A stretch of 64,000 bases of DNA, taken from contig OZ176051.1 in NCBI GenBank assembly GCA_964247055.1, positions 4,402,001 through 4,466,000 on the forward strand, given 5' to 3'. This document shows positions 2,422 to 62,526 of the stretch, piece by piece. Position numbers and translations under genes: made by a program. The DNA is from Paragordius varius. Taxonomy: Eukaryota > Animalia > Nematomorpha. Within the stretch, counting starts at the first letter, position 1. Every line of letters begins with the position of its first letter. Below the pieces are notes generated by a model. That model was given only the letters and a program-made list of their open reading frames with translations, searched no databases and was not told the origin of the DNA.

Positions 2422-2942
2422 CTAAAAATATTATAAAAAAGCTTACTTTGAAAACGGGTTCAAGGGAAATTTTGGATTCTATTGTGGTGAGAGTTAACTC
2501 TAAAACTATAATATATATTTATCAAACCTTTCTTCCCTTTGGTTAACTTTGATTTTAAACCAACACGTGGTTTATTATTAAAATTTGAAGACATTAAAAC
2601 CAGCTAGTTAAGTCGATCCTTAAAAACATGTGGTATATTAAACGCTGTTGGACACATTTGTAGAATGAAAAATTAGGCTGTGGTCGGTAAAAATATTTAT
2701 TTTTGGTTTCACTTTGATTCAAATTGGGGTATCTAAATACCTCAGATAAATTTAAGTTAAATTTTTTATAAAACTACTGAAAGAAACCAATTTAAATTTA
2801 TGCTTCTATCCTAATAAAAATTAAACTATGCCAAAATATCCAAATAATATTTTGTTTTAAAAAAAAGTTCCATGTCAAATTACTTCGACGCCATTTTTAT
2901 TTTATAAAATTTTTGCAAAATATCGTCTTCATTTAATTTTAA

Positions 2943-3517
2943 CACTTGTATACAATACATTCATCTTAGTCCTTCGATTCAAATTGGGATAGTTAAATAC
3001 CCCAGGCCTGTTTAAAATTAAATTCTTTAAAATATATGGAAGGAATCGATACCATGGCATAATCTTGCACCTATATAACATTAATAAACCGAAATATATA
3101 AAAAATATATATTCAAAAATACTTGATATAACTTATTTTAAGCTAAAACCGAAAGGTAAAAATTTATTCAACGTGACATGCTTATAGTAAAATTGAAAAA
3201 TAATACCAAATAAACAGCTTTTTCTATTTCTATCAATGTTAGATGTCATTTAAATAAGAAATTAGTTTAAATATTACCCTTAAAATTAAATGAAGACGAT
3301 ATTTTGAAAAAATTTTGTAAAATCAAAATGGCGTCGAAGTAGTTTGACATGAAACTTTTTTAAAAAACAAAATTTACTTTAGATATTTTGGCATATTTTT
3401 ATAATTATTAGGATAAAAGCATAAATTTAAATTAGAACCGTGTCCTTGAGTAGTTTTTTAAAAATCCTAATTGAAATTTAGTCTGGGTTATTTAGATACT
3501 CCAATTTGGATCGAATG
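2943..3517 (+). mobile_element. piggyBac-like MITE nested in an oppositely oriented copy of the same family (about 2710-3850)
   Basis: TTAA at 2939-42 and 3518-21. The flanks 2710-2940 and 3520-3850 join to give the reverse-orientation element seen uninterrupted at 30535-31105. Confidence 0.7.
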
Positions 3518-4186
3518 TTAAAGGGAAAATTAAAGCTAAATTTTTATTTAAATTACATCTAACATTGATAGAAATAGAAGGTTTTTTTTTTCTTATTTTT
3601 ACCATTGCACACATGTCACGTTGTCTAAAGTTTTACCTTTCGGGTTTAGCTTAAAATAAGTAATATCAAATATTTTTAAATAAAAATTTTATATATTCCG
3701 GTTTATTAATGTTATATCAATGCACATTTTGCCATGGTTTCGATTCCTTCCATATTTTTTAAAGTATATAATTTTAACCAGGCCTGGGGTATTCAATTAT
3801 CTCAATTTGAATCGAAGGGCTGAAATGAATGATGTGTTGTATCCAATTAAGCCAGTTGTAGTCACAGAAAATTTTTAAAAAATATCATCTTGCCTCAAGG
3901 ATCGCGCACCAATTTTATAATTCTTTGACAACAGATAATTTTATAATCAAAATGAGTATATCAAAAAATATAATAAATATTCATAGCCATAAAATAGGAC
4001 TTAGGGCCGCTTCCACTTTTTAAAACCAAATATTAACCAAGAACTTATGTAATGAAGTTATTGGGATATTTAGATTATATTTTGAGACTTTTTTAATTTA
4101 ATATTTACTTACCAAGTGTTCTTTGTACTAGAGCTTTAAAATAAAAAAGCGATTAATTTGTTTTTGCTAGGATATGATTATCATAT

Positions 4187-6489
4187 CTAGAGGGCCCTGT
4201 CACGCTTCGCTGTGACTTAGTCTCACGGATAATTATTCTTATTAATTTGCAATAAATAGAGGTAATGGAGAGGAAAATAATAAAAAACATATTTACTAAA
4301 TATCTTTAATTATTCTTTTACAGGTTTTTGCATAAGCTCAAATATTGTTTACTCGAAATAAACCATATTTAAACTGTCCCTTAATAAAGTTAATATTCAA
4401 CTATCATTGGATTTATTTTGAGATTTTCGTTTTATGAAATCATGGTTAAAAGCTTATTTTATTTTGAATTTGTGTTTACACATCCGGGATCAAGGGATAT
4501 AAAAAGTAAATCATTTGTGGTCCCTTTTTAAAGAAAAAGAATGATATTATACAAATCCCCCAGAAATGTGTTTAACTAAACTCATATGTTTCTTAAGTTT
4601 TTTGAAAATTAGCTCCAAAACCACGCCCTTTTTATATGGCGTCTTAGTTTTAAACCGACCCCTACCCATAGACCTTTATAAGAAAAAGCGAGTAAAATTC
4701 TTTGCCTTTAGGGCAAATATTTGTTCATCTTTGATACCATCGTCTCATATGCAAAAATAATCGTTTTATGATGACGTATTTTTGGAGCATAAAGGCCCCA
4801 AATTAATGGCTAATAAAAAAACGCCTGAACTTTTTACCTGGTTACGGGTAATATAGCTTTACATAAGCTCATATGGCTTCATAAACTTTCTGTAAATTAG
4901 CTCCAAAACAACGCAATTTTTGTATAATGGCGCAGTTTTTGGCGGGTAGCTCTTAACCCAGGGGCAAATATAAAATAAGCGTTGGGCAAAATTTTTGCCT
5001 TTATGTGGGGAATATCTGGAATTATCATGGATTCCATATGTTCTTATTAGACATATAGGTCAGAAATTTGGTTCCAAGGGCATGCTATATTGATAGATGA
5101 CGCAGTTTTACGCGGGTACCCTCCTAACCAGGGGCGTAACAAAAAAGGCTCAATTAAAATTTTTGCCTTTATTTGGATAATACCTGGAATCATGATTGAT
5201 TGCATATGCTCTCGTGAAATTATAAAAAAATTTCCTTAAAACCAAAGAGTTATTCTATGGTGGCACATTTTTACGGGCAAGGGCCTGGGTAATATTTTAA
5301 GCCCTTATTGAACTCTATGACCTGAAAAGTTTTTTGCCTCCAAAGTCACGATGTATCGATATGGTGGCGCAGTTGTTGGTGGGTAACCTCCTGCCCATAG
5401 GACAATGTAAAAAAAAATTTCCTGTATAGGGAATACATGGAATCATCATTCATTCCATATGTTTTTAATAGTTTTTGGAGAATGGCTTCATAACTAAATA
5501 ATAGTTGAATGATATTTTATTAGGGCGTAAAGGCCCTAATTAACGGCTAATTCAAAAAAACCGCCCGACTTAAATTTTTCCCTTTATACGGGGAATATTT
5601 CGGGCCCTTATTAATCTTATATGGCCTGATAGTTTTCTGAGAATTAACTCCTAAACAACGCAATTTGGATATGGTGGAGCCGTCGGTTAGGTCCCTACCC
5701 AGAGTCTGATACAAAAAAAGCGCTTGATTAAAATTTTTGTCTTTTTACGGAAAATACCTGGAATCATGATTGATTCCATATGCTCTCATTAGTTTTTGGA
5801 AAAATTGCATCAAAATTAAAAAACATTCTATGGTGGCGCATTTGAGGTGTGAAGTGCCTAATTAACGGCTCATTTTAAAAAACCGTACGACCTAAATTTT
5901 TGCCTTGTTACGGGTAATATTTTAAGCACGTATTGAACTCATATGGCCTGGTAGGTGAAATTCAGCCCCAAAGGCACGCTATTTCGATATGACGGGGCAG
6001 TTTTTGCAGGTATGTCCTTGAGCAGCCAATATAATAATGCGCACGACTAAAATTTTTACCTTATCTGGAATCTTCATTAAATATTTACGGTCTCATACCC
6101 TGGGCAAAAATAGATTCGAAAAATTATTTTTGTGGACATAATTTTTTGAAAAAATGGCATTTTACGGGGGGAGCGGGTAAAAAGAGGGCCTAAATTAAAA
6201 AAGCAAGCCGACTATGTTCGGCGCAATCGAAAGTAAAAAATCATATTTGAAATCGAATGGTCCAACACATTTTCTGGAATATTTCAAAGACACGATTTTT
6301 GTGGACCTCTTTCAAAAAAACCCGTTTTTTACACGGGGTGGGCCCGAACTGGTGGCCTAAGTCAAAAAAGGGCGAATCGCGGCATTCATTAATGATTATA
6401 GTTTTTCGACATTTGGATTTGAATAAGGCTACCGGTTTTCTGGAAAGAGAACACAAAGCCAGCATTTTCCATGTTTATAAATATATAGA
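4187..6489 (-). mobile_element. Related Helitron copy with an internal degenerate tandem array; 3' end tentative
   Basis: A|TCTATATATTTATAAACATGG at 6489. 6100-6489 is the reverse complement of about 56919-57330. GTCACA-GCGAAGC-GTGAC hairpin plus CTAG at 4187-4216 on the same strand. Confidence 0.55.
4560..6110. repeat. Degenerate tandem array, units roughly 290-440 bp
   Basis: Recurrent motifs AGCTCCAAAAC-ACGC (about 4611, 4899, 5336, 5646, 5963), GGAATCATGATTGATTCCATATG (about 5019, 5186, 5439, 5761, 6067) and TGGCGCAGTTTT. Confidence 0.7.
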
Positions 6490-7729
6490 TTATAATAACT
6501 TGAATACAAAGGAGTTAAATGTATACCCTAGGCCAACAATTAATATTTAAAAAACACTAAAAAGGAGGTCACAATTTAGATTTTATGAATCTATTTTAAC
6601 ACTTTTTGACTTTTTCTATTTTGTGCGAGATCTGTATTAGTTTTCTACCCGATAGATAAAAGTAGTAATCAAACTACTGTGAATGTAAGTAGATATTAAT
6701 ATAACATTAGGTAAAAAAGCTTATATTTTTACAGTTTTCTAACTTCTAAATAATAAAATTGGGACAACTCCAGAACATAATTGACAAACAGTTGATAATT
6801 ATAATATATCAGTCGTTCGTAGCCTAAACGCTTTTTAAAAGTTAATTATTCACATTTTTCAAACATAATATACATTTGTTGCCTGTTGCATTCGCAGTTT
6901 AAAAAAAAATAAAAAAATTGCTGCGAAAAAAATTGAAATGGGGATTTTTTTACAATTTATATTATAAAAAAGTTTGTATCATGCGCATAAAAGACTAAAG
7001 AAACCATATTATTAAATTTGGCCCAATTTTATAAATATTTTTAAGATTTTGAAATTATAATGGACATGGGGAATGGTATTACTCCAAAAGGTCAAAGAAA
7101 AAAAGCCAAAATAAATAACCCAAATTACATTTAAAAAAACCATTTTTAGTTCACATCATTAAAAAATAGTGTAATCACATTTGAAAAATGCTTTAATTCG
7201 CATTATATTTAACGTTAGCTAATGCACATATGTCATGTCTAAATTTTTGACTTCAGGTTTATTCAGAAAAAAGAAAATTCCACATCATTAATAAATATAT
7301 TTTATATTTCAATGCATCAATGTTTTAAATAATGCTATTTTCAAATGATTCAATATACATTCCATAATTTTGAATATAATTTATTTAACAAGATGGCCGC
7401 CAACTACCCAATTTGTATCGGAGGACTAAGGAGTTTTTAAAGATTCAGTTAATTTTTTTCCGTAGACAATACTGCGTTCAAAATCGGGGGGTATAAAAAT
7501 ATGATGAAATATATAAATTCTTAGGAAAACGTACCAGGATTATCATGGTTTTTTTAGTTTTGGCACTTAAGAGCGAATTAGGAATTATTTACACTTTTGT
7601 GGTAAGGGCTCCATATCAAAAAATGGCAAAATTTGTATAATAAATAAATATTTTTTGGTAAAAGCTAAATGCTTTATTTTAAAATATCACTAAAATATAT
7701 AAGCTGCATATAAAAAGCAAAAATAAAAA

Positions 7730-8073
7730 TTTTTATTCAAAAATAGTTGATATTACTTTTAAGCTAAATCCGAACGGTAAAAATTTAGTCAACGTGACAT
7801 GTGTGCAATGGTAAAGTTGAAAATATTACAAAATAAACCGCTTTGTATTTTTCTATCAATGTTAGTTTGTAAAATAAAAATGGCGTCGAAGTAGTTTGAG
7901 ATGGAGCTTTTTTTAAAAACAAAATTTTATCAAGATGTTTTGGCATATTTATATAATATTTATCAGGATAGAAGCATAAATTTAAATTGGGACCGTTTCC
8001 TTCAGTCGTTTTTTAAAAATATTAATTTAAATTCAGTCTGGGGTATTTAGATACCCCAACTTGAATCGAAGTG
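7730..8073 (+). mobile_element. 5'-truncated copy of the piggyBac-like MITE
   Basis: Ends GGGGTATTTAGATACCCCAACTTGAATCGAAGTG|TTAA. Confidence 0.65.
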
Positions 8074-10174
8074 TTAAAGCGTTGCTATACCATTCACACT
8101 CAAAACACAGTGTCCACAAAAAAATCCTGATGAATTATAATGGTTTTGGCTCTTACGAGAGATTTGAGATTTCATGACCTTTTATTGTAGTCTTATATCC
8201 CAGAACGATTGGAAATTTGGATATCTTTAAAATAATTTAAGATAATAAACCGAATTTAAAAATATGATTTCTTTAGCCTTTTAGGCGCACAATACAAATT
8301 TCTAAATTATGTAAAATTGTGAAAAAATCTTTATCTCAAACATTGGCCGCCATTTTTTGTTTAAATTTTTTAAATCGCTAAAACAATAGGGAAATAAAGT
8401 ATATTATGGTTAGCAAATGTAGACACATAAACTTTAGTAAGATTTCAGGTTATTTTTTATCAGCGAAAATTGAATTTTATTTCAATCGTTTGGGAACTGT
8501 CTTAATTTTAGACGCTAGAAATTACAATATTTTAATATAAGCCTTTTTGTCTATTAAAGGCGAACAATGTTTAATAATTAAATTTAAATAAAACCCTCAA
8601 AACAGCCCTCTTTTGTGGTAACCGCTCCATATCAGAAAATAGCAAATTTTGCGCACATTTTGTAGAATAAAGTTTTTTGGTAAAACTAAATTCTCCATTC
8701 CTTAAAATATATTTATGTATAATAAGCTACGTATGAAAATTCCGAAAGTCCCAAATTTTTTTGCTCTTCTCTGAGCTACTTGTCATAAAATAATAAAAAA
8801 TCCGAGATTGAGCGATAAATATTAAATACTTTTAAAAAAAGCATATCAAAAATCTAATTAGCGAATTTTGTCGAAGCCTTCATACTATTAGCATGATGAA
8901 ACCGTATAAAAACGCTTAAAGATACTACTTTTAATTTAAAGGTGCGCTTTCTTAAAAATTTTGGTAAATTATGTAAAAATATTTTAAATATAAAGACCAA
9001 CAAATATTTAGGAAAATGAAATAAGATAATTTTTTCAGGTTACGCCTTCTCATAATTTTTAGTTCAAGAATAATCCCTAAATATCAACAGCACCATAAAT
9101 TGTAGCGAGCATAATTATTTACCCACGGAAAATGAGTCATGCCATATATCATTGGTCAAACTGCAGCCCACGAACCGGATTCGATCCTTAAATCGATTTT
9201 TCTGGTCACCTGCAAAAATAAAATTTCATCATGCAAGTCTAAATCGACTCACATCACAATATTAGGATTATATTTGGAATGTGATGAAAAAACAAAAATC
9301 TCGCCATTTTAAATAATGTGATACTTAATTAAACATATTTTTAATTTATGATTGAAAACATGTTTATTAAATCAATACACTTACTCTTATTTTTGAATTA
9401 ACGTCATTAAAAATTATGCGTGACCAATAGCGATTATTTATAAAATAAAGATCACAAACTGTATACATTACACCAGAAAATGTGACTAAATTTTCATTTA
9501 TTTCTTATCGGCACACCTTATAAAGCGCAAAAAACATGTATGATACTTAAAAAAGGATATGATGCCAGAGATTTTAAAATTGCCATAAGCAATCAACCTA
9601 AATATATTTTAAAACTAAATTGGTGTACAACTGTTTGACATATTATTTTTACGAAAGAATAATATACGCAAAATATAGTATTTATTAATGCAACGAATTA
9701 AAAGTTAAATATGGTTGGTATTATATATATATAATGGTAAAACATCCATAATATATGGCAAAACAAAATCCAAATGTATATGTATTCGTTACTATCCAAA
9801 AAATAAAAAGAATGTTGTTCGATTAAGGTAGAAATTCTTAGAGAAAAACAAAATAGTTGTGTTATGACTAAATTATTGTTGGTGTGTTAATATTCAATAA
9901 TAATAATCCAATTTGTTGTGTAAACAATTATTTATAAAAATATTAAAAATTGATCCAATATCAATAGCATACAAATCTCCAAATTTAGCCAAAAAATAAT
10001 GTAAAGAAAATATAGTTGGGTAAATCTACACAAATTTTGTCTTTAATAAACGGCGCATTGAAATTTCCAAAATATAAGATATCACATAATGGACATATGT
10101 TACGTTCAAAATCAGCATAGCCCCACGTAAAATATCTTTTGACTGACGAAAAAAATCCAAAATAACTAAAATTT

Positions 10175-11574
10175 TCAATTCCCTTGATTCCAATACAATG
10201 GTTGCCCAGAATTCAAAGAAGATCCAGTTATAGACGGTCTGTTATTGGGTGTAACTGTAAAATATAGATACATAAACTTTATTAAAAATGGTAGTCAAAA
10301 ATTAAATTAAAATGAAGTACTAATAATTTATTGTAAAATCTATATAACAAATAAACACATTATAAAAAGGTGTGGCTCTTGCTCTTTTTTAAAGATGAGT
10401 TATGATATAACAAAATAATTTTTTTATTTAATTAACAGTGTGCATGCAAGACAGCATGCAAAATTAATTCAGATGTTAAACCAAGCTTAATATAATAATT
10501 GTGTAACACCTTATGAAAAACAAATTATTTTATATATAAGCAATGGTATAATTTAATTTGTTTGCAGAAAAATATAAAAGTCATATGCATGATAACTTAA
10601 ATATCATTGTTGATCAACACATAAAATAGGTAGTGGACACATCAAACCTTGCAAAAAAATTTAAAATAGGAATAAAAACGATATTCATTTAATATGAGTA
10701 TCTTGGAGCACTATTCCCTAGATTAATTCTATAAATTTAATTAATTTTATTAATATAAGTAATGTGTATAATATTGTGTACAATTCAAATACAACAATAA
10801 AAAAGCAGTTAAAAATATTTTCAAAAAAATCATTTATTTAATAACAATTACAAATTACTTAAATCCAAATTAAACGTAACATTAATAGGAGATCACAATA
10901 TTACAAGTTCATTAACTCGTTTAAACTTATGGTGTTCTGTATTTATAAAATATAATTTTACCCTGTAATAAATATAATATATATCCGAGATTTTTTAATG
11001 TGTAAATTAATATAACGTCCAAAAAATGATGAAATAAAAAGGTAAATTTAAATATTTTTAAAATACAATAACCCTATATAAGATTAATGTAAGAAGGTAA
11101 TATACTAAAAAAATGACATAAAAATCACTAAGGTTTAATTGAGGCAAATCCATTGAATTGGGGTTTATCAATCTTTCATTCATATAAAGCCAAACTTTTC
11201 AAATATTTTTAACTTATCAATATACAATTTTTCATTATAAATAATGGAAATAATTTCAATTTTCTAAATACTCAAAAAAATAAAAGTAAGAGTAAAATAA
11301 ATGGCCAATTAAATATTTTTTCTCTGTCTCGGATAAAGTTAATTAATTTAGTTGTATAAATTACCTTTCTGGCTGTTATCATTATGAGTCAATGTAGAAG
11401 GAGGCAAACTTAAACCATTACCTGCGCTGGATGATGAAACTCCACTACTCCCAGTTCCTAAATAAAGGAAATAATAAATATATATATAAACTAAAAGAAA
11501 GAAAATAAATGTCTAAATATTTCGTACATAAACTATATTATTTAAATTTTTATATAAGTGTTTCATATATATTA

Positions 11575-11609
<35 letters not shown>

Positions 11610-13758
11610 CCTCAATCTTTTGAAAATTTATGCATTTTCAAGGGCGGAAAGTTAAGCTTATAAAATAAACTGTATCATTTGAATAAAAAGTTATTCATAA
11701 GTTTTCGTGACCATCAAAACCAAGTAACAATTAATTACCTAAGATACTATTTTTTGGGGGTGGTAAACCATTATTGTTGCTATTAGTATTGTTTCCGACG
11801 CTCCCATTGTGATTTAAAATTATATTATTACGAGTTGGTGGTATATTCAATAACTGATGATGAGCATTCATAAAAGGCAAATGTAATGGCGGTTGTTGTG
11901 CGAACGAAATTAGATTGGATCCTTTCAAAGCATTGGCTGAACTTTAATAAATATATATATATATGATGTAAAAAAATAAATTTGTTAAAATGTTTTATTG
12001 TGTTATAATAATTCAAAGTGTAGTGAAACCAAAAAGCGTATGTACTGATGGGAATAAAAACACTCGTTTTTTCTAAACCCTTTTTGGTTATGATACAACT
12101 TTTTCTCAGATATTTTATTATCTTGTATAAATTACTTTTTAACCTTTTTTTAAACTTCTAAAAAATATATATGTATACTCGTTAGTACCACTCAAAGACA
12201 AATTGTCACCCAGTGTCATATTATTATTATTATTCTGTATACCGCCAGCAAATGTTGAAACGGAGTTGTTGTTAACACCATTATTGTGATTTAGGAGGTA
12301 GAAATCATTCAAATTTTCTTTCATCACATTATTATTATTTGTTAATGATTTCAAAAAGTGAGGTGGTGGCGGTACATTGCTACTTAAGTTATTATTAAAC
12401 GACATTGTAGATTGGTAGGGCAATCCGGCTCCTCCAGTAAAAAAATCCATTGAATTAAGCGATAAAAAGTGTGGGGGAGGGGGCATTGGGGGTAGATTCA
12501 ATAGAGTCGTCGTAACATTAGTAGTAATTGTAGACAAATTCCCATTCGACATGTCATCTAAAGTATTGTTGACCATATCGGGCATGTGGACAGTACTATA
12601 TAATATTAAACACCTTTTTGTGAAATATGTAAAAAAATCTTTCACAGGACATATCATTTTTTCAATTAGGAAAAAAAACTCTCGTGTTGTATTTTTTTTA
12701 AATTTAATTGAAAAAAACGCATTTAAATAATATATATGCAAGTTTCGTTATAAATCAGAATCTGATTATATTTCATTTTATTAAGGTAGTTTATCCTTTT
12801 TGTCAATTTTTATACAAACACAACTATTTAAAAAGTATATATATTTTTATGTTAGGTAATTACCCCTTAATCAAATTCATGTTTTGTAGATATGCATTTT
12901 TCATATTCTGTCCATTCCCTCCAATATTATTCATATTATTGATTGGTGTGGTCTTATCATTATCTCGTTTGTTATTGACTCCTACTTTTATATTACTGCT
13001 ATTGCTATGGCTATTATTTAACATAAATTGGTCCATGGTATTTAAAAAAGAAGCCCCATGCTGTGAATTATTTCCAGGAATATTTCCTTGTAAAGGTGAT
13101 AAATTTACAACATTACCCAAATTTTCAGTTTTCGTTAAATCCTTTAGTAGCATTGGATTTTTTGGCTCATGAGGAGCATATTTATTAGGCACGTTATTAC
13201 GGTTGTTAGGGGCATGTAAAGCATTAAAATTATTATTATTGATATTATTTAGCGAATTATTATGGTGTTGATGATTTGATAAACCAGCGGTTCGAAGGGG
13301 AAATGGACTCACCTAAAAAATGGTTTAATCATATAATTTTTATGGAGTTTGTTTATATTTTAGTAGATTAATTTTGGGGCATTAAATTTTTGATAATAGT
13401 TAAAAAATAATACATATATATACCATTAACTTTATTTAGATCATTACTACTTAAATTATTAAAACATAAAAATGCCTGTGCATCTACCATAATATTATAT
13501 TTTTAATATGTAATTTAAAATAAAAATACAATCTAATTTAAATTATTTTTTATATCATGTTAGTTTTAAAGAATATTTCCTTTTTTATAAATATCAAAAA
13601 ATATAAGCAAATTATTTTAGTATTATGGAAAAAGCAAAAGAATAAATAAATAATCCATCAATATCCAAAAAATCGAGTGAATTTTTTTATCAAGTTTAAT
13701 TGGATATTTAATAAAACGAGGTTAAAAAGAGTCTACACAAATTTGTAAACTTATAATG

Positions 13759-13795
<37 letters not shown>

Positions 13796-16700
13796 TACCT
13801 TGTTACCATCGGATCCAGTTTTATTCGTAACATCTATAAAAAAATAAATTTTTAAATACTAACCAATTTAATAAAGCATCACGATTTTTAAATAAATAAA
13901 TATTTACCAGATTTAAGTCCCCCCAAAGAAGAATTCGAATTAAAGTTATGGTTGACATGCTATATAAGATATTTATAAATTAATTATTGTGGAATTATTT
14001 TATAATAAATATTTATCGCTAGAAATGTTGAAAAAAAAATAATTTACCATAGGTGGTAAAGTTCCTAATCCATTTGCTGCATTCAATGTTGCTAAAATAT
14101 ATTGTGTATAAAATCGTAAAAAAATATGATAAAAATGGGTGATGGGTATAGATTTTTTTAACATTTAAAATTCAATATCATTCATAAAATAAGGCAAAAA
14201 AGGTAAACCAATAACTATATCATAGATAAACCATGTTTCATGCAAATAAATTAAATTTTTTAATTAAAGACAACCATTCTTTATATAAGGCAACAATTTC
14301 TGTTTTGAACTAACTTTTTCATTCAAGTTTTTACTTAAACTAAAGCGTAAAAAAACCTATTTTGCCCTTTTCCAACATCGTGTTACTGATGTTATTATTG
14401 TTAGGATCCATTAAAACTGAATTCATCATGCCAGGTAAAAGTTGATTCATAAAATACGCATTATTTGGAATATTTGAGGTACTGTTTGCCCCTATAAAAT
14501 TTGTCGAAACCATATTATTAGATGGTATCAAGTTTTGATAATTACCCAAATTTAAATTTGCCATAATGGGTTGTTTGTTCGCTAAACCGGTAGATGATAC
14601 TAAAAATACAGTAAAAATGGAAAATATTTAAACATTTCATAAAAAAACAAAAACAACCATATAGTTTAAAGGTGTTGTTAATTAAGGAATCGATTGGAAT
14701 TGGTAAATCACTCAGTTTATACCATTTTGTAATTATGTTGAAAATACAATGTTTAAAAGAGCTTCAGTTTTGTCTTTTAAATATTAATTATCTAACCATA
14801 ACAATCAAGCAAGTTAAAACACTGAAAATTTAACATGCGAACATTTTTTCAAAATCAGAAAATGATGACAAAATAATGATTTAAATAAAAAGGAAGAATG
14901 AATTCCTTCTTTTGTAAAATTAAATTGGTGTGGTTTATACCATTCGTATAATTAACGTCATTTTGCTGGTGTGTAGCCAAGATTTGGGAATTATTTTGTT
15001 GATGTTGTTGTTGATTTAAGATATGTAAGGAGTTTGTAAATTGGAAAAAGTCAAGGGGGAGACATTTAAATATTTGGCAATGTTCTTCAAACGTGTATGA
15101 AGTGGGCGGTAAAGATGGACCCGATCCTGCCTCCTAATAAAACGTAATAAAATAAAATTTATGAGTATAAGGATTATTTTCTGCATAGTAAGCGATATTT
15201 ATAGAATTAGAGTTATTAAACTTGTAACAACGTAGATTTTAAAATGTTATATTTCTGTTTAATACATTTCTGAAAGAAATTGATTTAAAACGATAATGCA
15301 AAAAGTTTTTTACGTTTAATAACTTATTTAATTTTCCATTCAACTTAATATTTATCCAAAAAAATAATGTATGAAAAATTATCTTACATAAAACGATATT
15401 TGAGGTGGTATGGGTTGGCCCATCATATTATATGTTGTTTGATGTGAAGGTTGATTTTCAAGTGTCGGTATTGATTGTTGCACGGGTACAGTCATTTGTG
15501 ATTTATTGTTGTAATTTAGCTGGTTAGTTGTCGTAATCGAATTTAACGTATTTATATGGCGGCCATTATTAATATAATCATTATTTGTTGGTAATGAATT
15601 TCTTTTATCATTATTGGTATTAAACTTTGTTGGGTGGTTGTCGGTTTCCATTGTTTTTAGTACATTTTGGGGTATTTTATTGGGCTGTAGGTTCAAAGTT
15701 GTGTTGACTATAGAAAATAATGTAAATATAATAAACAGTTAAAAAATAAATCGTGTTTTTATATGTATTTAAAAGATTAATTTAATTTAAAACCACCTGA
15801 AAACCAGCTCATGGGTGTTTTAAAATGCCAAAATTTATTGAATGTATACAAAATGTTAACAAAGTATGTAAGCTTACTATCAAAAGGACCAATGCCTAAA
15901 AATGATTGAAAATCAAAAAATGAATTTTAGATTGGTAATAAATAAAAAATTGGTTAAATGGATATTTAAAGCGAAAATCACAGTTTACAAAAAAGTTTTT
16001 TTTATAAAACTTCTCGTTACTAATATGCGATATTTAAATCCGATTTATTTTAGCCATAAAAATATATGATACATAATCATTGGGGTAAATTGCGTAAAGT
16101 GTAAGTTTTATTACCGTTGTTTATAGATTCCGAATTAGCTTGCAGATTATCCTCTTTAAAATCTGTCCCAAATATTTTTCCCAATGAAATAGGTATTCTA
16201 TATTGATTATAATTAATAAATATTAAAATATAATAACTCTTTCTACACGCAAATAAAAAAATATATTACGTTGCATTTATAGGCGCTAGTACATTAGTTG
16301 TTGATATAGAAATTTTAGATTGTGAGATAGGGCGGTTGGAATTCGTCTCAGGCAAACAATCTTTTCCCGTATTACAAGCGGGTTGTCCAATATTTTTGCC
16401 ATTAGTATATTCATTTTGGTCAAATCCAAATTCATTGTTTGTTGAAATTTTTGTTGCAATTTTGCCCATTTTATTCGTTGGTGATAAAGCGTTTTTGCTT
16501 GTACTTTTTTCAACATTAATCTCATTTTCATCGTCTTCCTCATCCAAGAAAAATGAAATTCCGCTAAAATCTGAAGCAGGTACCCCAAATTCAAAATTTA
16601 TGGGTAGGGTAGGGATATGCCTGTTATTTGGCATAACCACAGGTATAGTAGGTATCTTGGAGAGGGGCGGTAACTTTGGTAGGGTATATGATGCATTTTG

Positions 16701-19277: not shown

Positions 19278-19416
19278 CACATTAATTAAATGATATATTT
19301 ATATATACAATATTTACAAGAATAAATGCGAATAATAATAAAAAAATTATAAACTAAAAATTAAAACAATGCACCGCCATTAATGAATGTATGTAAAACA
19401 TTAATCCATTATTTAA

Positions 19417-19967
19417 ACTTGGATTTTAGTCCTTCAATTCAAATTGGGGTAGTTAAATACCCCAGACCTGTTTATTAAATAATTTAAAAAAATAGAAGGA
19501 ATCAAAACCATGGCAAAATTTTGCACCTATATAAAATTGATAAACCGAAATATATAAAAAAATTTATTCAAAAATACTTAAATTTTTTTAATGTAAAACC
19601 CAAAGGTAGAAATTTAGTTTATGTAACATATGTGCATTGGTTAAATTGAATAATAATACAAATTAAACCTTTCTATTTGTATCAATGTTAGATGTAATTA
19701 TAATAAGAAATAAGCTTTAACTGTAAAGTTTGAATCAAATAACGTGATATTTTGCATAATAGTAAAATAAAAATGACGTCCAAGTAGTTTGACATGGAAC
19801 TTTTCTTTTTCAAAACAAAATTCTATTTAGATATTTTGGCTTTTTTATATATTATTTATTAGGATGAAAGCATAAATATAAATTGGGACAGTTTTCTTCG
19901 GTAGTTTTTTAGAAATATCGATTTTATTTTAGTTTGGGGTATTTAGATACCCCAATTTGAAACGATG
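19417..19967 (+). mobile_element. piggyBac-like MITE copy just upstream of the UBAP2L-like start (duplicate at 37372-37922)
   Basis: Same internal sequence and subterminal repeats; left TTAA intact, right end degenerate. Confidence 0.65.
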
Positions 19968-20149
19968 TTATAATATACGACAGTAAATTACATACATATA
20001 AAATTTGAAAAATAATATTATACCAAAACATAAGCTAACATTATGTTTTTCAAACATTTATTGATTACTTTTTTGCTTTTTTAAATTCTATTCTATTTTA
20101 AGAAACCTTATCAACACCATTATTTTCTCACTTTTTGTCCTGGTTTGTG

Positions 20150-23430: not shown

Positions 23431-23434
23431 TTAT

Positions 23435-27510: not shown

Positions 27511-27780
27511 ACAGATAGCTAAAAGCTTAGAATAATAATTAATAATGTAATGAAAATTTCGTAAAACTTTATAGGCAAAATTATTTATTATAACTTGGAT
27601 TGCATTTTCTTGCACATTACATAAAATAATAATTTAGGTAAAGAAAAACGCTTCTATTTTGTTAAGAGCACAGATTATCTTGCATAGAATTTTTTAAAAT
27701 GATATATTGATATTCAAATTACCAAAATTTTTTATTTCTTACGCATAATGCATTTTGAGTCTATTATTATTGAACATGAC

Positions 27781-33791: not shown

Positions 33792-33800
33792 GTCAATATT

Positions 33801-34000: not shown

Positions 34001-34069
34001 TATTTTAGCCATAAAAATATATGATACATAATCATTGGGGTAAATTGCGTAAAGTGTAAGTTTTATTAC

Positions 34070-46200: not shown

Positions 46201-49200
46201 GGGCTATATAAAAAAATTTTAGTACAAAATATAAAGAAGCCAGCCTTTTGTTTTAGTAGTTAATGACAAAGAAAAAAAATTAACCTATGATATTGTGCTT
46301 TTTGTTGGGATATAATTTACCCAAATGTTATCCGTTAAAAATTACATAGTTTATAAATATATAAGTTCTTTATTAATAATTATAAACTAATCATAATGAC
46401 TTTTGCAATTAGAAAATATTAAAATGTTTAAGATTAAAAATTTATAATGATATAGGTATAAAAATAAATTACATTGCCGATATAAAATCAAAAAATTGGC
46501 AGATTTCAGAAGGTCTTCTTTCAAATGCATGGATAGGGGGGGCGTACCAATAACTACTGTTACTTTTCAAGAACTTTGCGATGGAGATCCAATTTCTTTT
46601 ACATGGTTTCTTAACCCTAATTTAAATTGATTATACCTTTTTGAAATGTTTTATAACTTTTAAATAATTGGTGAAACAGGCACAGAGCACAATTTTCTTT
46701 AAAGCAGCTTTCCAATTTATGTCCATATATTTATGATAAATCGTTTCACTTACGTTTTAAAATACAAGAAATGAACTGTGTCAACTTGATGTTTGTTTTT
46801 TACAAATAATGTAATGCGTTATTAGGTGCATTAAATAAAATATTCAAAAATTTTAGCATAATATAAATGGAGATTATCTAATTAATGTGCTTCTCATCTT
46901 AAAATAATCGAAAAAAACCGCGATTTGGCATGAAAAATTTAAATATGTGAATTTTTCCCTATTAATTAAATAAGAATATGAATATGATTAAGTAAAAGGC
47001 GGGCGGAAAAAACTATAACCGGCGTAACCAATTATAATCATTAAAGTTAACACCATAGACAGAATTTTTTACGCTTGCTCACCAAATCAGGCCTTCTTGC
47101 AAAAAAAGGCATTCAAAATGACGAACTGTGTCGAATATTCGGAAGTGGCCAATATACAGTGGTGGATCTACGGGGAGGATTATCTAAAAATACCAGTATA
47201 TAAGCAAACAGAAAATTACAATAATTGCCATTCTGAACACAACTAACACAGTGTCTACAAATAAATAGGCTGATGAAATATATATATTCGGATAGGAAAA
47301 TGTATCAGGACTATCATGGTCCGTTTAGTTTACCATTTTAAGAGTGATTTAAGAAAGTTTTTTACCCTTTTGTGGTAAATGCGCCATATCAAAAATTAGC
47401 AAAATCTGCGCACATTGTTCAAAATAAAATATTTTCGGTAAAAGGTAGAGGCTTCATTCCAAAAAATATCATTAAAATATATAATAAACTATATTTAAAA
47501 AGCAAAACAATATATTTTAGGTTTTAGTTTTTAGGGCTCCAAAAGTTTCACATTTTTTTGCTTTGTTATTTCTTATAAAATAAACGCATGAATTTAAATA
47601 ATATGGTAAATTTTGATAGCATAGTTTTATTTATAACTTTTATTACTAGTAAAATTTTGTTGTACATACTTCACACATTTTTAAGCCATACGCGTTAAGA
47701 TATTATGAAAACAACTTGTCTATATAAATCGGTAATGCTGAACATTTATATCACCTGAGAATTTCGTCTTCAAATTTATGTCAAATACAAATTGTGTTTT
47801 TTTTTCAAAATAAAATTTTAAGACAAAACCTTTAATTTTGGAGTGATAGAAATGTTCAGTGTCATCAAAGTATATAGAAAAATTTAATATCTTAAGTGAC
47901 GTAGGCTGTAACATTGTTGAAAATTAAATTTTCAAAAAATTAATTTTTGAAAAATATATTTTTGATATTTAGCATATATTTAAAATTTTAATCGGGCGAT
48001 TTCGGTTTTTGGCTCATATTTAAAGAAAGTCAACTATCTGATGGAAAAATAAAAAAATTTTTATTATGTTTTTTATTTGTAATTTATGATATATTTTAGT
48101 GATATTCTTTGGAATGAGGCATTTAGTTTTCACCAAAAAATATACACTTCCTTAGCTTTTTACTATATTGTCCTAGTTTATATATTGGGGTAGTTTTGTA
48201 TACCAGAGCTTAATTTTGAGATAAACTGCAGTTTTGAAAGCTATTATAGTTAATATTTAATAAATCGTTCTCAAATATTAGATAAAAATGTTTTACTTTT
48301 TACAGCTTTGTGACTTCTAGATTATAAAACTGGAATAGCTAAACACGATTATAACGAACAGTTGATATTTAACAAGCTATAAAAAAATTTATCGAAAAAA
48401 ATTGCGGCAAATAGTTTGTATAATTTTTCATTTTTTTGAAATTTTTTTTTTGGATAACGCGCCCAAAAGGCTAAAGAAAGTATATCAAACACTTCGATAC
48501 AAATTGAGGTATTTAAATATCCCAGACTAAATTTAAATTAATATTTTAAAAAAACTACTGAAGGAAACGGTCCCAATTTAAATTTATGGTATGCTTCTAT
48601 CCTAATAAAAATTATATAAATATGCCAAAATATCCAAACAAAATTTTGTTTTGAAAAAAATTCTATGTCAAACAACTTCGACGCCATTTTTATTTTACAA
48701 AATTTTTGGCAAAATATCGTCCTCATTTTAGGGTTATAATAAAGGATAATTTTTTATTTAAATTAAATCTAACATATATAGAAAAAGAAAAAGCGGTTTT
48801 ATTTAAATTATTTATGTTTACGATTTCACACATGTCACGTAGACAAATTTTTTACCTTTCGGGTTTATAAAATAAGTAATATTAAATATTTTTGAATAAA
48901 ATTTTTTATAATTCGGTTATTAATGCTATATAAGTGCAAAATTTTGCCATGGTTTCGATTCCTCCCATATTTTTAAAATATTTGATTTTGAACTGGCCTG
49001 GGTTATCCAACTACCCCAATTAAAATCGGAAGACTAAAATGAGTGTGTTGTATCCAAGTGTTAATTCGGCTTTATACCTTAAATACTATTTAAAATATTT
49101 AAATTTCGAAGCTCCACGATATAATAAAAGAAAATAGAGTGTTAAATAAATGTCAAATGCCAGTATCTAAGATAGAGCAGCTACCACTAAAGTGTAAATA

Positions 49201-50874
49201 ACTTTCTTGAATCACTAGTAGGGGCCAAAATAAAAAGCACTATAATCCAATATATTTTTCTTCAGAATATATATTACCGGAGTATTTTTTGTGGAGTACC
49301 ATTATCTCTTCATTCTTTTTAAAGATCCAAAGCCTTCAAATATAATTAAATCTTTTGTAATAGTCGTAACACTTAATGACCTTTTGGAGTAGTTTTATAT
49401 CCCAGAGCGATTCGAAATCTTCTCAATATCTAAAAAAGTATTTGTATTATGCCGAATCCAAAAATATGCTTTCTTCAGCTTTTAAGACACATGCTTAACA
49501 CTTTGATTCAAATTGGGGGATCTAAATACCCCGACAATTTAAATTGATATTTTTATAAAACTACTGAAAGAAACGGTTCCATATAGATTTATGCTTCGAT
49601 CCTAATAAAAATTATATAAATAAGCCAAAATATTTAAAAAAATTTAGTTAGGAAAAAAAGTTCCCTATCAACTTGGAACTCATATTTATTTTACAATATT
49701 TTTGCAAAATATTGTGTTTATTTGATTCTTAGCCTAAAATTAAGTTTACATTTTTATTAAAATCACATTTAACGTTGATATAAACAGAAAAAGTGGCATA
49801 CTTGGCATTATTTTTGTATTTGCTTATGCACACATGTCATCTTGACTAAATTATTATTCGGTTTTACTCCTGGATAAGTACTATCAAGTATATTTGAATA
49901 AATTTTTTATTATATTTCGGTTCATTAAATATGAGTACCAACCTTTGCCAGGTTTAATTTATTTCTTATTTTTTAAGCTATTTATTTTTAAACAAGTCTG
50001 GGGTATCTAACTACCCCAATTTGAATCAAAGTACTGAAATGAATGCCTTGGATACAAGTGTTAAAAATATTTTAAGAAATATGTACAAGTGTAAGGGAAT
50101 CCTCATTCAAACTTTTTCGCTGAATTTATTTTCTTTATATTGTTTTAAATCGCTAATGCAAAAGCGAACAAATATATAGGGTTAGAAAATGTAATAATTA
50201 ACTTTTGCAAGCTTTAAGGTTACATCAGCAATATTTATTTCGAAATGAGCTGTTTATTTCAATGTTTTGGAGTTGTTCCAATTTAGACACCAGAAGCCAC
50301 AAAACTGGAAAAAAATTAAGCTTTTTTATCTAATACACAACAACAATGTTTAATAATGAATATTTAACCAAAATAACTTTCAAAACAGTAGTATATTTAC
50401 AAGATGAGTTTTGGAATCTCGGAATTTTCTAATAGATTGCGGACAAAAAGGTTAAACGGTCAGGAAGAGTTAATTTAGAGTTAAGCAACGAATAATTTAA
50501 TCAAAAATAATTGATAATAGTGTTTAGCATTATTAAATTCTGCAGAAAAAAATGAATATCGTTTCCATAGCCTTAAAATAGCGAAGTAGCGCCACATTCC
50601 GATATATAAATTTCAAAATACCTTCAATTATTTTTTATCGTTATTCAATAGCGGTTTTTGTGCTTATTTTTATAGTTTTGGCGGACATATGGGATGTACA
50701 AAAATTATAGTATATATTAATATTGTTTCATTTCAAATATAGTAATGATATAATATATTCTCCATTTGTAAAAAGGCTCTTAACTACAAGAATAACATAA
50801 ACTCTATTTTTCAAATCATACGTAGCGAAATAAAAATATAAAACAGCTTACCACTTTTGAGTTTGCTTTTTGAG

Positions 50875-52282
50875 ATGTCTCCTTTGTTTATATTTTTACT
50901 AGCACTTATTATCCCTGTTAAATCAGATAATAATTTTGACGCTCATGCGCTTTCAATTTACATAAATAATCTTGAAACTACATGGAAGGTTTATTTTTTA
51001 TAAGTAAAGGCTTATCCCTTTTTTCACAATACCAGTTATGCTGACATTGAAGGTTTAATGGGCGTTATAGATACTGGTCATAAATTAACTCTGGGAAAAC
51101 CTTTACATGACTTGTCATATATCTTCAATGATTTGCCAAAAAATTTTGACAGTCGCCAACAATGGCCAAATTGCCCAACAATTAAAGAAGTTAGAGATCA
51201 AGGATCTTGTGGGTCATGTTGGGTAAGTATAATTAATATATAATTTTGAATATTTATTTATATTATTCCATTTTTTTAATTGTGTATCTTTTAGGCGTTT
51301 GGAGCTGTAGAGGCTATGTCGGATCGCATCTGTATAAATAGTAATGGAACTGTAAATGCACACATTTCAGCCGAGGATTTATTGTCGTGTTGTAAGAACT
51401 GTGGTTATGGGTAAATATCTCTATTTTTACAACTTTAGAGTCGTTAAAAAGTATAATTAATTTTTGGAAAATGTTTGGTATTTGACACATTTTACATGAG
51501 ATTTACTTAAATTAATATGCCTTAATAATCTCGATTCGCTATTATTAATGGTTTTAAATGATTTGTCTCAATGTATACTTTTAAACATATAACATAAATT
51601 ATATATAAAACTTAGTTGTAATGGTGGTGTACCCGGTTTAGCCTGGGAATATTATAAGAAATTTGGACTTGTAACCGGAGGTCAATACGGTTCTCATACT
51701 GGCTGTCTCCCCTATGAAATACCTAAATGTGAACATCACACTACTGGTCAATATTTTTTAATTTATAATTTGAATAACTTATAAACAAGATTTTTCATAA
51801 AAGTTGGAAAGTTTTTAATCTTTGAAAAGGTTAATAATTATTTTATAATATATTGGTTAATGTATCGTAATACAATTATTATTTGAATGATATTTTTAAT
51901 TTTTGATATAAAGAATGCTAAATAGACTATTTTGCTACAAGCTACGCATTTTGTTATTTTTTTGCAATATATTTTTATAATTTATAAATATTATAATAAA
52001 TACTTGTTTTGTAAAAGTATTAGAAATTAATAAATAATTTGTATGGTTTGTTTGTTTTGTTAAATAATATCGCCAAATATTAAAAGTCATTTTTTGCAAA
52101 TATAAATTGTGATTTACAAAAATATTTCTCATTGTTCGACTGTATATCCATAGCTTTCATATAGTGCAACTTTTTTGCAATTATATAATTAACATTTAGA
52201 AATGGTAAAGTTTAATTTCATTGATCATTTACTCATAACAATTATTTATGTTAGAGTGAGCGCAATATGTAGTTATCATTTA

Positions 52283-52325
<43 letters not shown>

Positions 52326-53428
52326 GAATATATTTTGTATAATTTATTTTAGGTAAATACAGTCCATGTGGAAAAACTGTAAAAACACCCAAATGCGAAC
52401 AACAATGTGAATCGAATTATGGCAAATCATACAAGGATGACAAATTTTACGGTAAAATTTATCAAACCAAAGTTTTTGAGACAAAATGTTTAAAAGATTA
52501 ATATTTAGAGGGAGATAAAAATCTTTACAATTTAATTTTGTTTTTAAGATGTATTTTATCGTTTTCGCTTCCTAAATAGTGAAGAAAAATGTAAATTGGT
52601 AAAACAATCAATTTTCTGATTCTATATGATATCTAAGCTCAACGATTAAAAAAATGCTTTTTGTTTAGTATTTGTTCTTACTTTAATCCTTACGTTTTTT
52701 TATACAAAAATCTAATATTTTTTAGGTAAAGATGTATATTATGTCCCAAGTCAACCCAAACAAATTCAGGCCGAGTTATTTCTTTACGGACCAGTAGAGG
52801 CGGCCCTTGACGTCTATGAAGATTTTTTGCTTTACAAATCTGGTATAATTCATATTTCATTAAAATAATTTAATATCATCGGTTATTAATGTATTTATGA
52901 CTTTGAAATTAATTTTATACGTTTCTCAGATGATCATTAAATATTACTGAATATGAAATAGTAGAAGACCCAACTTTCATGTATAAAAAATGGCAAATTA
53001 AATGATCAATGATTCATTTTTCAATTGTTATAATTATATATATGTAATTATTATTTTAAAATTTTATTTTTCTTCTATAGTTTAAATACATTTGCCCATG
53101 TAAAACTGTATTATTAAGCGCGATTAATACCACAGTTTATTAATTGTTGTTAAAATCATCCCAATTTATATCATGTATATTTGATTGATTTTTGTTTTAT
53201 ATTCCGTAGGTGTTTATCAACACAAAAAGGGTCGAGCTTTGGGTGGACACGCCATTAAAGTCCTGGGGTGGGGGGAGGAAGATGGAATCCCTTACTGGCT
53301 TGCAGTTAATAGTTGGAACGATGATTGGGGTGATAAGGGTTTCTTCAAAATTTATCGGTAGAAAAAATAGACACGTTTTTTTTGGTTATTACGACTTAAA
53401 TCTCCCATAAATTTCTCAAATAATAATG

Positions 53429-53496
<68 letters not shown>

Positions 53497-54386
53497 GATT
53501 CTTTTTATTAAAATAAATTTTGGGCTTAAAAGTACGGATATTAACGAGATTAATATCATTATATTTTGTTTATAGTACATTAACTTCTTCAGATCAAAAC
53601 TGGGATAAAAAAGTAAATAAAAACTATGAAATAAAATGACAATAAAAAAGGTTTTTAGTTTTTAGAATTTACATGGTCCACCTACATATTTGAAGAAGTT
53701 TTTACTAGTATAACCATTTAATCAATATTATTTTTATTATAATAATATTCGCTCTCTTAAGCCCAAAATTAATTTTATTAACTATATGAAGATGCGAATC
53801 GAATCCCTCAATTATATTTATATATATGTAACTTATATAATAGCTTTTAAAATCACATAAATTAATATATTCAAGTAAAAAATAACATTTTTTTTCAATA
53901 TAATAGGTTATTGGTCTAATTTATATGATATTTTTATGTTTGCACATGTAGTAGTTTTAAAGCGATATAAATTAGGTTAAAATTGAATATATGCATACAT
54001 ATGTTAAAAAAATTGTTTTTTATACTTTTTATCGGTTTTAGCAGCTTGTATATTTTTATTAACATTCAGTACTTATGTACGTACATATTTACCCTTTATA
54101 TTTTTTATTCTTATGAATATTTTTCTTATAAATAAATAAACTATTTTTAATTGCGTATGTAATGCGATAAATATATTCTTTTTTATTTCTATGTATTTTT
54201 TAATAATTTAATTATATGTATAATGTGATTAGAGGGCGTAATGAATGCGGAATCGAATCAATGATATACGCTGGACTTCCGGATTATGAAAGGAGCTCAT
54301 ACACACCCTTGATAACTTCTAACGGTATAAAATATTTATTAATAAAACATTGTGGAAAAATTTGGATTAAAAAGAAATTTTTTTAA
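50875..54386 (+). CDS. CTSB: Cathepsin B (papain family C1A) preproenzyme
   Basis: Exons 50875-50988, 51010-51222, 51295-51410, 51616-51746, 52353-52451, 52726-52842, 53210-53357, 54233-54386 (or 54233-54324 plus 55082-55155). Signal peptide [17 protein letters not shown], propeptide TTWK|AYPFF, mature [30 protein letters not shown] (catalytic Cys), occluding loop CEHHTTG, GGHAI (His), VNSW (Asn), [10 protein letters not shown]. Confidence 0.95.
53432..53495. repeat. (TA)n microsatellite in cathepsin B intron 7; shorter ones at about 11579-11607, 13760-13790 and 52286-52322
   Basis: Direct reading. Confidence 0.95.
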
Positions 54387-61000: not shown

Positions 61001-61598
61001 AATAAGGTGTTAAAACTGATGGTTTTTTAAGTATATCATCATTAAAAACCTCATCAGATTCAATAATTACACCGATCCACTTCCATACTCCAAAAAGATA
61101 TTTCCCATATGTTTTCTTTTTGAAAACGGACCAAAAGCGTTCGTTTAATGCCAAAAAATTCTGAAAAGATTGGTATTTTAATTTTATGAAAATTGACTAT
61201 ATGCAAATGCACAAAATTATCGTATGAGATAACCTTTTGCTTACATGCTACGGTAATGGTAAAATTCAAATTTTGTAGTTTAGGACAAAATTAAATATTT
61301 TAGTTAATTATTTGACAAGCCTGATTTAGTTTCCCCTCTCCGAATATATCGGTTAAATTGATATCATAATCTTACACGATAATTGCCATATGTTTCAAAA
61401 TATTATAGATCTATAGACGGTGTTTGTTAAACAGAGTTTAACTCTAATTTTATTTTTTAAGTTTTGACAAGTAGGTAATAAGGAGTTGCTATGTGATATG
61501 TCCATTTGTTTATTAATTAATTATTTATAATATCTTTGGCCAAAGTTAATCCTCTATTTAAATTAATTGCATTTAAATATACTTTGGTTCATTATAAC

Positions 61599-61856
61599 CA
61601 AGGATGTACAACATGCAGCCCTCTAAAATCTGTATGAGCCCGCAAGAAATTTCAAATACAATATTTTAACAAAATCCAAGTTTTCTAAAATAAATTTTCT
61701 GAGTCAATCTTCCCGAATTTTAATTAATTTTTAATTGTTAAAATATAGTAGCTTTTCAGTCGTATGATTGAAATCTAATAAAAAATTTGTTTATTCCCAT
61801 ATATTTTTTCGATCCAAAAATGCGGCCCGTGAAACCATTTGTGATGAACACCCCTG
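61599..61856. mobile_element. Second, degenerate hAT-like MITE copy
   Basis: CAAGGATGTACAAC...GATGAACACCCCTG; flanks ATTATAAC and ATTTAAAC match at 6 of 8 positions, consistent with an 8-bp TSD. Confidence 0.6.
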
Positions 61857-61921
61857 ATTTAAACAATAAATTTGTTCTTTGCAATCAAGATGCTCTTGTA
61901 ATTAAAAAAGTGATTTGTTAA

Positions 61922-62526
61922 TTATGGAGACATGTTGTACCAAAATGGTAAGAAATCACCCCGTGGTTTTAATTCCAAAATCTTAAAAATTTCCGGTTCC
62001 TACCTCACAGAAGCAGCCAGGTTTTGGTTTTATGTTTTCGGCTTGGCTCTCTCCCCCATCATCTTCCTATTTCCTTTCTTTATTTTTATATCTTATCCAT
62101 TACAATTATTAAATTCTTAAAACATGTAATTCTTAGCAATTTAATTATTTTAAATTTCAATAATAGATTAAAAAGACCCAACTTAATAAGTCATTGTTTT
62201 TTAAAGTAGTGTAAATTTATCATGATTAATTTTCTCAAATTCTTAGTTTTTTAAAATTTATAAATAATAACATTTAACACACTAGCCCACATATCTATTA
62301 ATTATGAACCATAAACTAATCAACTCAGTGTGGAGCAGTGTAATTTTGATCTTTGTAGACAATATAGCTAGTTTTTATATAATACTGATGTCATAAAACA
62401 ACTATCTCAAAATTTATTCCAGTTTTTATAAACAAAATAAGAAACTGTCACCATATTTTTAATCTCATCTTGTCATTTATTACCTTTACAAGGTTAACGA
62501 TATATGTCCATGTCTTATAAATCTTA
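61922..62526 (-). CDS. Possible 3' exons of an unidentified gene (KIYKTWTYIVNLVK | EDDGGESQAENIKPKPGCFCE | ILELKPRGDFLPFWYNMSP*)
   Basis: Phase-compatible GT-AG pieces 62484-62526, 62004-62066 and 61922-61981. The acceptor before 62066 is purine-rich and weak; no recognised homology. Confidence 0.25.

Follow-up and report, generated by a model that had tools for sequence, protein, structure and literature searches.

Does a genome that keeps introns of only some twenty bases beside introns of a kilobase need separate machinery to splice them? The question is raised by a 64,000-nucleotide (nt) stretch of the horsehair worm Paragordius varius (contig OZ176051.1 of assembly GCA_964247055.1, positions 4,402,001 to 4,466,000; hereafter the window), in which introns of 21 and 26 nt lie beside far longer ones in a cathepsin B gene and a UBAP2L-like gene. 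From these, the initial annotation proposed a distinct class of 20-26 nt introns, handled by a distinct spliceosome that reads the hexamer TTATAA near the 3' end as a compressed branch site. Our analysis supports the length class; neither TTATAA as a motif nor a second machine stands up. We consider it probable, at roughly 80%, that the tiny introns are ordinary GT-AG introns of the major (U2-type) spliceosome, in a genome whose minimal-intron mode would have shrunk to ~21-35 nt.

Tiny introns in conserved domains and in the window

Introns were collected by homology. The whole genome was searched with Pfam profiles, which gave exon-by-exon matches, and 30 kinase and 30 Ras-family loci were taken by best match. 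Profiles were built from paralogues that carry the kinase or Ras domain as one open frame, and the loci were compared with them using our own spliced profile-to-DNA aligner, which admits GT-AG introns of at least 15 nt at a flat penalty in all three phases and forbids stops. An intron was called obligatory where a frameshift or an in-frame stop required its removal, and overlapping loci and reference genes were removed. This yielded 81 obligatory introns in 33 genes: 36 measured 21-35 nt, none 36-52 nt, and 45 measured 53-1408 nt, with an overall median of 58 nt, i.e. not below 30 nt. Judged by these homology-required introns, the bimodality of intron lengths is real, and the claim of a separate length class was borne out by the empty gap at 36-52 nt. 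The tiny class appears to be common, making up about four in ten introns of the conserved kinase and small-GTPase domains, and stands beside a broad class that runs from 53 nt to >1 kb.

The spliced products were recognisable as CDK5, CDK1/2, PLK, PKG, CHK1 and SLK-like domains and, among the small GTPases, as Rab1, Rab6, Rab7, Rab8/10, Rab11, RalA, RhoA, Ras and Ran. They aligned gap-free to the paralogue profiles, and RalA aligned in the same way to Gordionus and Helobdella proteins. The final set of tiny introns (n = 44) comprised the 36 obligatory cases, six stop-free introns with a length divisible by three (3n) that restore conserved motifs, and the two window introns. Lengths in this set range from 21 to 35 nt with a median of 25 nt, and 37 of the 44 introns are shorter than 30 nt; 14 (about one third) are 3n, with no depletion visible. 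The tiny introns are 89% A+T, compared with ~65% in the flanking exons. When the penalty per intron was lowered and the aligner rerun, spurious introns of 36 and 39 nt appeared at the expense of conserved residues and were dropped; two more stop-free 3n tiny introns from the rerun, which restore conserved motifs, were kept (24 nt, Rab11-like; 27 nt, Rab8/10-like). Intron calls of 15 and 16 nt (L035, L010) were treated as spurious. De novo scans for tiny introns by joining of open reading frames, codon-usage chains and flank tests were left unused, as decoy borders (TG..GA, GA..TG, AG..GT) matched or exceeded GT..AG.

Within the window, the two best cases held (Table 1). The 21-nt first intron of cathepsin B contains an in-frame TAA (51001-51003), in the frame that leads from the signal-peptide exon and resumes after the intron, so that read-through is impossible. 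Splicing it out fuses ...ETTWK with AYPFF..., and beyond the junction residues 5-22 align weakly (E = 0.02) with positions 22-39 of the cathepsin B propeptide profile (PF08127, 40 positions), at a place that leaves the correct room for the upstream TTWK. Residues 42-71 after the junction match Peptidase_C1 positions 1-27 as well as PDB chains of mature cathepsin B. The first exon (38 aa), compared directly with PDB and Pfam, gave no match, the propeptide being too diverged. In the UBAP2L-like gene, frame restoration carries the case: the 26-nt intron links a 72-codon open frame, which holds a UBA-like domain (PF14555, 25.5 bits) and stops 15 nt after GTAAATTATCAATTATAATTTTTTAG, to 85 codons that are open in a different frame and phase. 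A further GT-AG candidate of 25 nt lies upstream of the first RBMS-like open frame, where no reading frame or homology demands its removal.

The cathepsin B introns measure 21, 72, 205, 606, 238 (or ~270), 367 and 875 nt, and those of the UBAP2L-like gene 26, 67, 277, 103, 376, 376, 608, 254, 341, 523, 486, 268, 237 and 281 nt. We recovered 21 introns in these two genes, against 27 in the initial annotation, and its description of two tiny introns with all others at least 67 nt long agrees with ours (2 of 21 and 19 of 21, respectively). Its description of the long introns as transposon-filled did not extend to intron 4 of cathepsin B (606 nt), a sequence that occurs once in the genome; not all long introns are therefore filled with transposons.

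Tiny introns are strongly polarised within genes. In the 14 genes with both classes, 60 of 62 within-gene pairs had the tiny intron upstream (5') of the long one (p < 5e-5), and one of the two exceptions is a doubtful 15-nt call; leaving out the two window genes gave 41 of 43. Tiny introns also showed weak clustering by gene (p = 0.044). Paralogues have both tiny- and long-intron positions in common and keep the same class at common positions, as at kinase profile position 59 (phase 2), where the introns of paralogues measure 28, 25 and 31 nt.

A comparison outside the species was provided by RalA. A protein search with the stop-free RalA frame of Paragordius retrieved three RalA proteins of Gordionus, which have no counterpart to the eight residues that translation of the 24-nt intron would give and are continuous across the 21-nt junction. 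Aligned exactly to their own locus (L073:6001-9050, OX940783.2), the Gordionus proteins give introns of 43, 52, 41 and 2317 nt, and those of 43, 52 and 2317 nt sit at the codon and phase of the 21-, 24- and 62-nt introns of Paragordius RalA (L039). The 41-nt intron is extra in Gordionus, and the extreme shrinkage is not seen at the same size in this relative. Length therefore drifts across the supposed class border (21-24 versus 43-52 nt) while position is unchanged, and the positions shared with Gordionus and among paralogues argue that the tiny introns are ordinary conserved introns that have shrunk.

Two further searches touched on Gordionus. For a ULK3-like intronless frame, the best database relative came from Gordionus sp. 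(40% identity over 89% of the query), followed by arthropods at ~55% coverage; ULK3 is intronless in both Paragordius and Gordionus (OX940786.2:14749923-14771572), and in the latter it is flanked by hAT-like transposase frames, with no other called gene within 10 kb. A protein search with a NIM1-like open frame returned no Gordionus protein.

Layout of the tiny introns and the machinery that would splice them

Tiny and long introns have a common consensus, GTAWNW...TTTWAG. In the tiny introns, A stands at +3 in 64-68% and T at positions -6 to -3 in 55-73% (62% overall), which matches the long introns, and the exon base at -1 is G in 50% of tiny versus 64% of long introns. Only GT and AG were imposed by the aligner, and the flanking consensus is independent of it. 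Neither the U12-type 5' site [AG]TATCCTT nor a branch box resembling TCCTTAAC was found among the tiny introns (0 of 44).

The hexamer TTATAA had been noted to end 6, 9 and 8 nt before the 3' end of the 21-, 25- and 26-nt introns of the window, and it is present there as stated. As a common motif, and as a compressed branch site, it failed a comparison with composition-matched controls. Using 38 tiny introns (the 36 obligatory cases and the two from the window) and shuffling the interior of each, we found TTATAA in 9 introns against 6.1 ± 2.2 in the shuffles (p = 0.13), and it was absent from the other 29, about three quarters of the set. With an interior of 53% T and 36% A, TTATAA is common by chance. 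T[AT]TAAT was likewise not enriched (10 versus 11.6 in shuffles), TAAT, TTAAT, yTrAy and TAyTAAy stood at or below the shuffled expectation, and the best UACUAAC-like pairing score per tiny intron was 5.58, compared with 5.70 ± 0.10 in shuffles. In the window introns, TTATAA is not itself a signal and is one of many AT-only ways of placing adenines.

When the 44 tiny introns were aligned at their 5' ends, A rose from ~30% at +7 to +13, where T reaches 59%, to 45-65% at +15 to +18. Over this zone A makes up 57%, compared with 38 ± 3% in shuffles (p = 0.0002 for the interval as chosen, p = 0.0005 corrected for the choice, and p = 0.0002 without the two window introns). When the introns were instead aligned at their 3' ends the A profile was flat (0.41-0.44), and the 3'-anchored geometry first proposed gives way to a zone fixed from the 5' end. 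Whether the tiny introns measure 21-23, 24-26 or 27-35 nt, the peak lies at +14 to +18, an interval in which each of the 44 carries one A or more; in shuffles 4.5 introns have none there. Long introns have no A peak at +15 to +18. The 21-nt cathepsin B intron carries A at +12, +14, +15 and +18 to +20, and the 26-nt UBAP2L-like intron at +15, +17 and +18. The three TTATAA copies of the window end at +15, +16 and +18, inside the zone. One part of the earlier idea of TTATAA as branch region has therefore survived, in that its adenines fall in a position-specific, A-rich and plausible branch region, although the hexamer is not enriched.

A tiny intron would accordingly read GTAWNW, a T-rich stretch at +7 to +13, an A-rich zone at +15 to +18, 0-12 variable bases, a T run at -6 to -3, and AG. 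The A zone probably holds the branch point. If the branch adenosine comes from this zone, its choice would depend on how far it lies from the 5' splice site; neither a sequence motif nor the spacing to AG would decide it.

It is also conceivable, though we think it unlikely, that these are U2-type introns in which the zone is not the branch region, the branch being chosen by proximity to AG or by no fixed rule. The adenines could then mark a binding site for a factor at the 5' end, or reflect a gradient of composition between two T-rich stretches. Such an account would sit well with the missing U2-complementary motif around the adenines, with a sample of 44 introns, and with the mere 4-7 nt that separate the zone from AG in the shortest introns, which is very tight for known spliceosomes. 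It does not readily explain, however, why no tiny intron is without an A at +14 to +18 or why the peak keeps its place in each length class and is missing from long introns. Moreover, 5'-anchored adenines are reported from two other animal lineages with introns <30 bp (Hadjez et al., 2026; PMC13644364).

We then consider whether the splicing machinery shows any sign of division between the two classes. The canonical components are present. U1 small nuclear RNA (snRNA) gave 14 matches and U2 snRNA 46 matches in the genome; two full-length U2 types were read, both with GUAGUA; between them the stems show compensatory changes, and the regions that pair with U6 are not the same. Dozens of weaker U2 copies are clustered or lie close to the ends of contigs (G000:C3:0.26-0.53 Mb; starts of C4, C6 and C8), and one U2 copy was read without its first ~40 nt. 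SF1, SF3B1 and PHF5A have one gene each. The profile match to PHF5A (G000:C5:13155820-13156158) spans 339 nt, with 27 nt in excess and one in-frame TAG, and the excess looks like a 3n tiny intron inside the gene of a branch-site protein. Of the minor spliceosome (matches at G000:C2:4857045-4857187 and G000:C5:10606517-10606667), U6atac is clearly present (66 bits), and U12 gave a weak full-length match (34 bits, below threshold); this spliceosome is probably retained with a divergent U12.

A dedicated spliceosome, snRNA or factor set for the 20-26 nt class, reading TTATAA near the 3' end, could draw on the clean length gap, on the existence of two full-length U2 types with compensated stems and different U6-pairing regions, and on U6atac, which implies that the genome has more than one spliceosome. 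We nevertheless regard it as highly improbable. TTATAA is unenriched and missing from most tiny introns, the splice-site consensus is equal in both classes with no U12-type 5' site in the tiny one, GUAGUA is identical in both U2 types, SF1, SF3B1 and PHF5A are single-copy, and homologous introns of 21-24 nt here measure 43-52 nt in Gordionus. A survey for divergence of U1, U2 and SF3B, which the initial annotation had suggested, found U1 present, the GUAGUA of U2 kept, SF3B1 single-copy, and no duplicated branch-site machinery. A second spliceosome for the tiny class thus has no support in the splice sites or in the components covered (U1, U2, SF1, SF3B1 and PHF5A).

That the tiny introns are not spliceosomal introns at all, and represent assembly indels, decaying pseudogenes or somatic DNA excision as in ciliates, is scarcely credible: they are known here from genomic DNA, the assembly has artefacts (the redundant contig described below) and their sizes resemble the short excised elements of Paramecium, but 44 independent cases combine GT...AG, exon G at -1, A at +3, 89% A+T and lengths of only 21-35 nt, borders and sizes that random indels would not give, at positions shared with paralogues and Gordionus in otherwise intact housekeeping genes.

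Several points weigh against the reading of the tiny introns as shrunken U2-type introns with a branch point in the A zone. The zone is drawn from 44 introns, and the GT-AG borders are partly there by construction, since the aligner permits no others. In the window, the cathepsin B junction is backed by a weak propeptide match and the 26-nt UBAP2L-like intron by reading frames. Lastly, the 60 loci belong to two conserved families, and their 44% share of tiny introns may not hold genome-wide, given 2 of 21 in the window. We infer that the tiny introns are spliced from RNA, and by the same U2-type spliceosome as the long ones.

Assembly of the window and neighbouring features

The window (GC content 23-32%; 26.9% for the Gordionus genome, according to the Gordionus genome paper) is interrupted by two 200-N gaps, and the contig between them is redundant (Table 1). 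In a self-comparison of the window, 16046-33800 equalled 34001-51755 with one mismatch in 17,755 nt (99.994%), and 1-678 equalled 15368-16045; the 14,489 nt directly upstream of the window are identical to 879-15367. Sequence across the second gap is discontinuous, restarting 17,755 nt back, and both tiny introns are therefore present twice in the window and are to be counted once. The contig between the gaps is a false 32.9-kb duplication, spanning a join that already exists seamlessly between the sequence before the first gap and that after the second. It doubles parts of the RBMS-like, UBAP2L-like and cathepsin B genes: the cathepsin B fragment that stops at 33800 and the UBAP2L-like fragment at 34224-37074 are duplicate copies, and every gene of the window is single-copy.

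Table 1. Introns, genes and assembly features of the window
Feature	Position	Strand	Details
Cathepsin B gene, complete	50875-54311	+	exons cover Peptidase_C1 profile positions 1-204 in order
Cathepsin B intron 1, 21 nt	50989-51009	+	GT-AG, phase 0; GTTTATTTTTTATAAGTAAAG
Duplicate of the 21-nt cathepsin B intron	33034-33054	+	in redundant contig; assembly duplicate, no second gene
UBAP2L-like gene	11363-19116	-	from UBA-like exon through 15 exons
UBAP2L-like intron, 26 nt	18893-18918	-	GT-AG; GTAAATTATCAATTATAATTTTTTAG; follows UBA-like exon, restores frame
Duplicate of the 26-nt UBAP2L-like intron	36848-36873	-	in duplicated stretch past the gap
GT-AG candidate, 25 nt	2422-2446	-	unverified; upstream of first RBMS-like open frame
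200-N gaps	679-878 and 33801-34000		
Redundant contig	879-33800		between the two 200-N gaps; left 15,167 nt equal pre-gap-1 sequence, right 17,755 nt equal post-gap-2 sequence

A dispersed 168-nt repeat occurs at 3355-3522, 7910-8077 and 19806-19973, in and around the RBMS-like and UBAP2L-like genes, and together with a 154-nt inverted-repeat pair (arms 2789-2942 and 3280-3433) it resembles miniature transposons. Elsewhere in the genome, an Arf-like domain is identical on two contigs with different flanks (L063, G000:C10:1742396-1742872; L064, G000:C11:1307111-1307587), and may reflect a recent duplication or a copy that the assembly failed to collapse. Four near-identical kinase-domain exon matches within 90 kb (G000:C5:12954178-13040878; profile positions 60-153, 48 bits each) look like a tandem kinase family.

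Other lineages with short introns and the significance of the class

A floor of ~30 nt is usually assumed for animal introns, and introns <30 nt have long been held absent from animals. Such introns have been described in myxobolid myxozoans and in the dicyemid Dicyema japonicum, with a median intron of 22-27 bp, weakly conserved adenines that lie farther from AG in longer introns, and a canonical U2 branch-pairing region; among 51 animal genomes, that study found them nowhere else (Hadjez et al., 2026; PMC13644364). The tiny introns of Paragordius resemble those of Myxobolidae and Dicyema in their GT-AG borders, lengths of ~20-30 nt, adenines fixed from the 5' end and canonical U2, in the parasitic lifestyle of the organism, and in forming a substantial class below 30 nt at conserved positions. 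They differ in that nearly all introns are tiny in Myxobolidae and Dicyema. In Paragordius, an ecdysozoan worm, tiny introns make up just 2 of 21 in the window and 36 of 81 in conserved domains, and long introns of up to 1.4 kb lie in the same genes. Splice-site logos are reduced to GTa and AG in those lineages, whereas GTAWNW and TTTWAG are kept here.

A second parallel is found in parasitic flatworms, including tapeworms, whose intron lengths are bimodal (modes of ~32 and 58 bp in Gyrodactylus salaris), with the short mode dominating the first intron positions, long introns following later and many long introns remaining; altered splicing machinery was a speculation of the authors (Hahn et al., 2014; PMC4040987). 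Paragordius is alike in having two modes, the short one at first positions, and many long introns left, and differs in its shorter short mode (~25 versus 32-36 nt), its empty 36-52 nt gap and its phylum. The premise of the initial annotation, that tiny introns normally exclude long ones, is in view of these flatworms only partly right (PMC4040987).

Among ciliates, introns measure ~25 nt in Paramecium and 15-16 nt in Stentor (PMC5014332; cited in PMC13644364). The tiny introns of Paragordius are similar in length, in strong AT richness and in the canonical spliceosome, but ciliate introns are tiny throughout. Paramecium selects against 3n introns that contain no stop; here, by contrast, 14 of the 44 tiny introns are 3n. 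U12-type introns offer a different likeness, a second class beside the major one, with U6atac present here as well; unlike them, the tiny introns lack [AG]TATCCTT and TCCTTAAC and have a U2-type consensus.

The kind of intron described here is therefore already known, from ultra-short animal introns and from bimodality of the flatworm type, and the horsehair-worm lineage appears to be a new member. Nematomorph genome papers, as far as they are searchable, make no mention of introns. We tentatively suggest, as one possible course of events, that horsehair worms evolved <30-nt introns independently of myxozoans and dicyemids, keeping kilobase introns in the same genes and tiny introns strictly 5', and that a ruler of ~15-18 nt from the 5' splice site picks the branch. 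If true, such a ruler would be well below the distance from 5' site to branch tolerated by known animal spliceosomes, and, with introns of 41-52 nt at the same positions in Gordionus, the further shrinkage would have happened recently and could be dated inside the phylum.

The finding may also matter for the annotation of these genomes. In common gene finders the default lower limit on intron length is close to 40 nt. A limit of this size would break many genes here, and annotation and completeness scores could be badly distorted; if so, broken gene models could raise the number of universal genes reported as missing from this group. For the biology of splicing, Paragordius would add an ecdysozoan worm to the two parasitic lineages from which <30-nt introns are so far reported (PMC13644364), and would be the first such case with tiny and kilobase introns in the same transcripts. 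It would thereby offer a natural setting in which to test how a single spliceosome copes with both sizes, and whether the distance to the branch point is counted from the 5' site.

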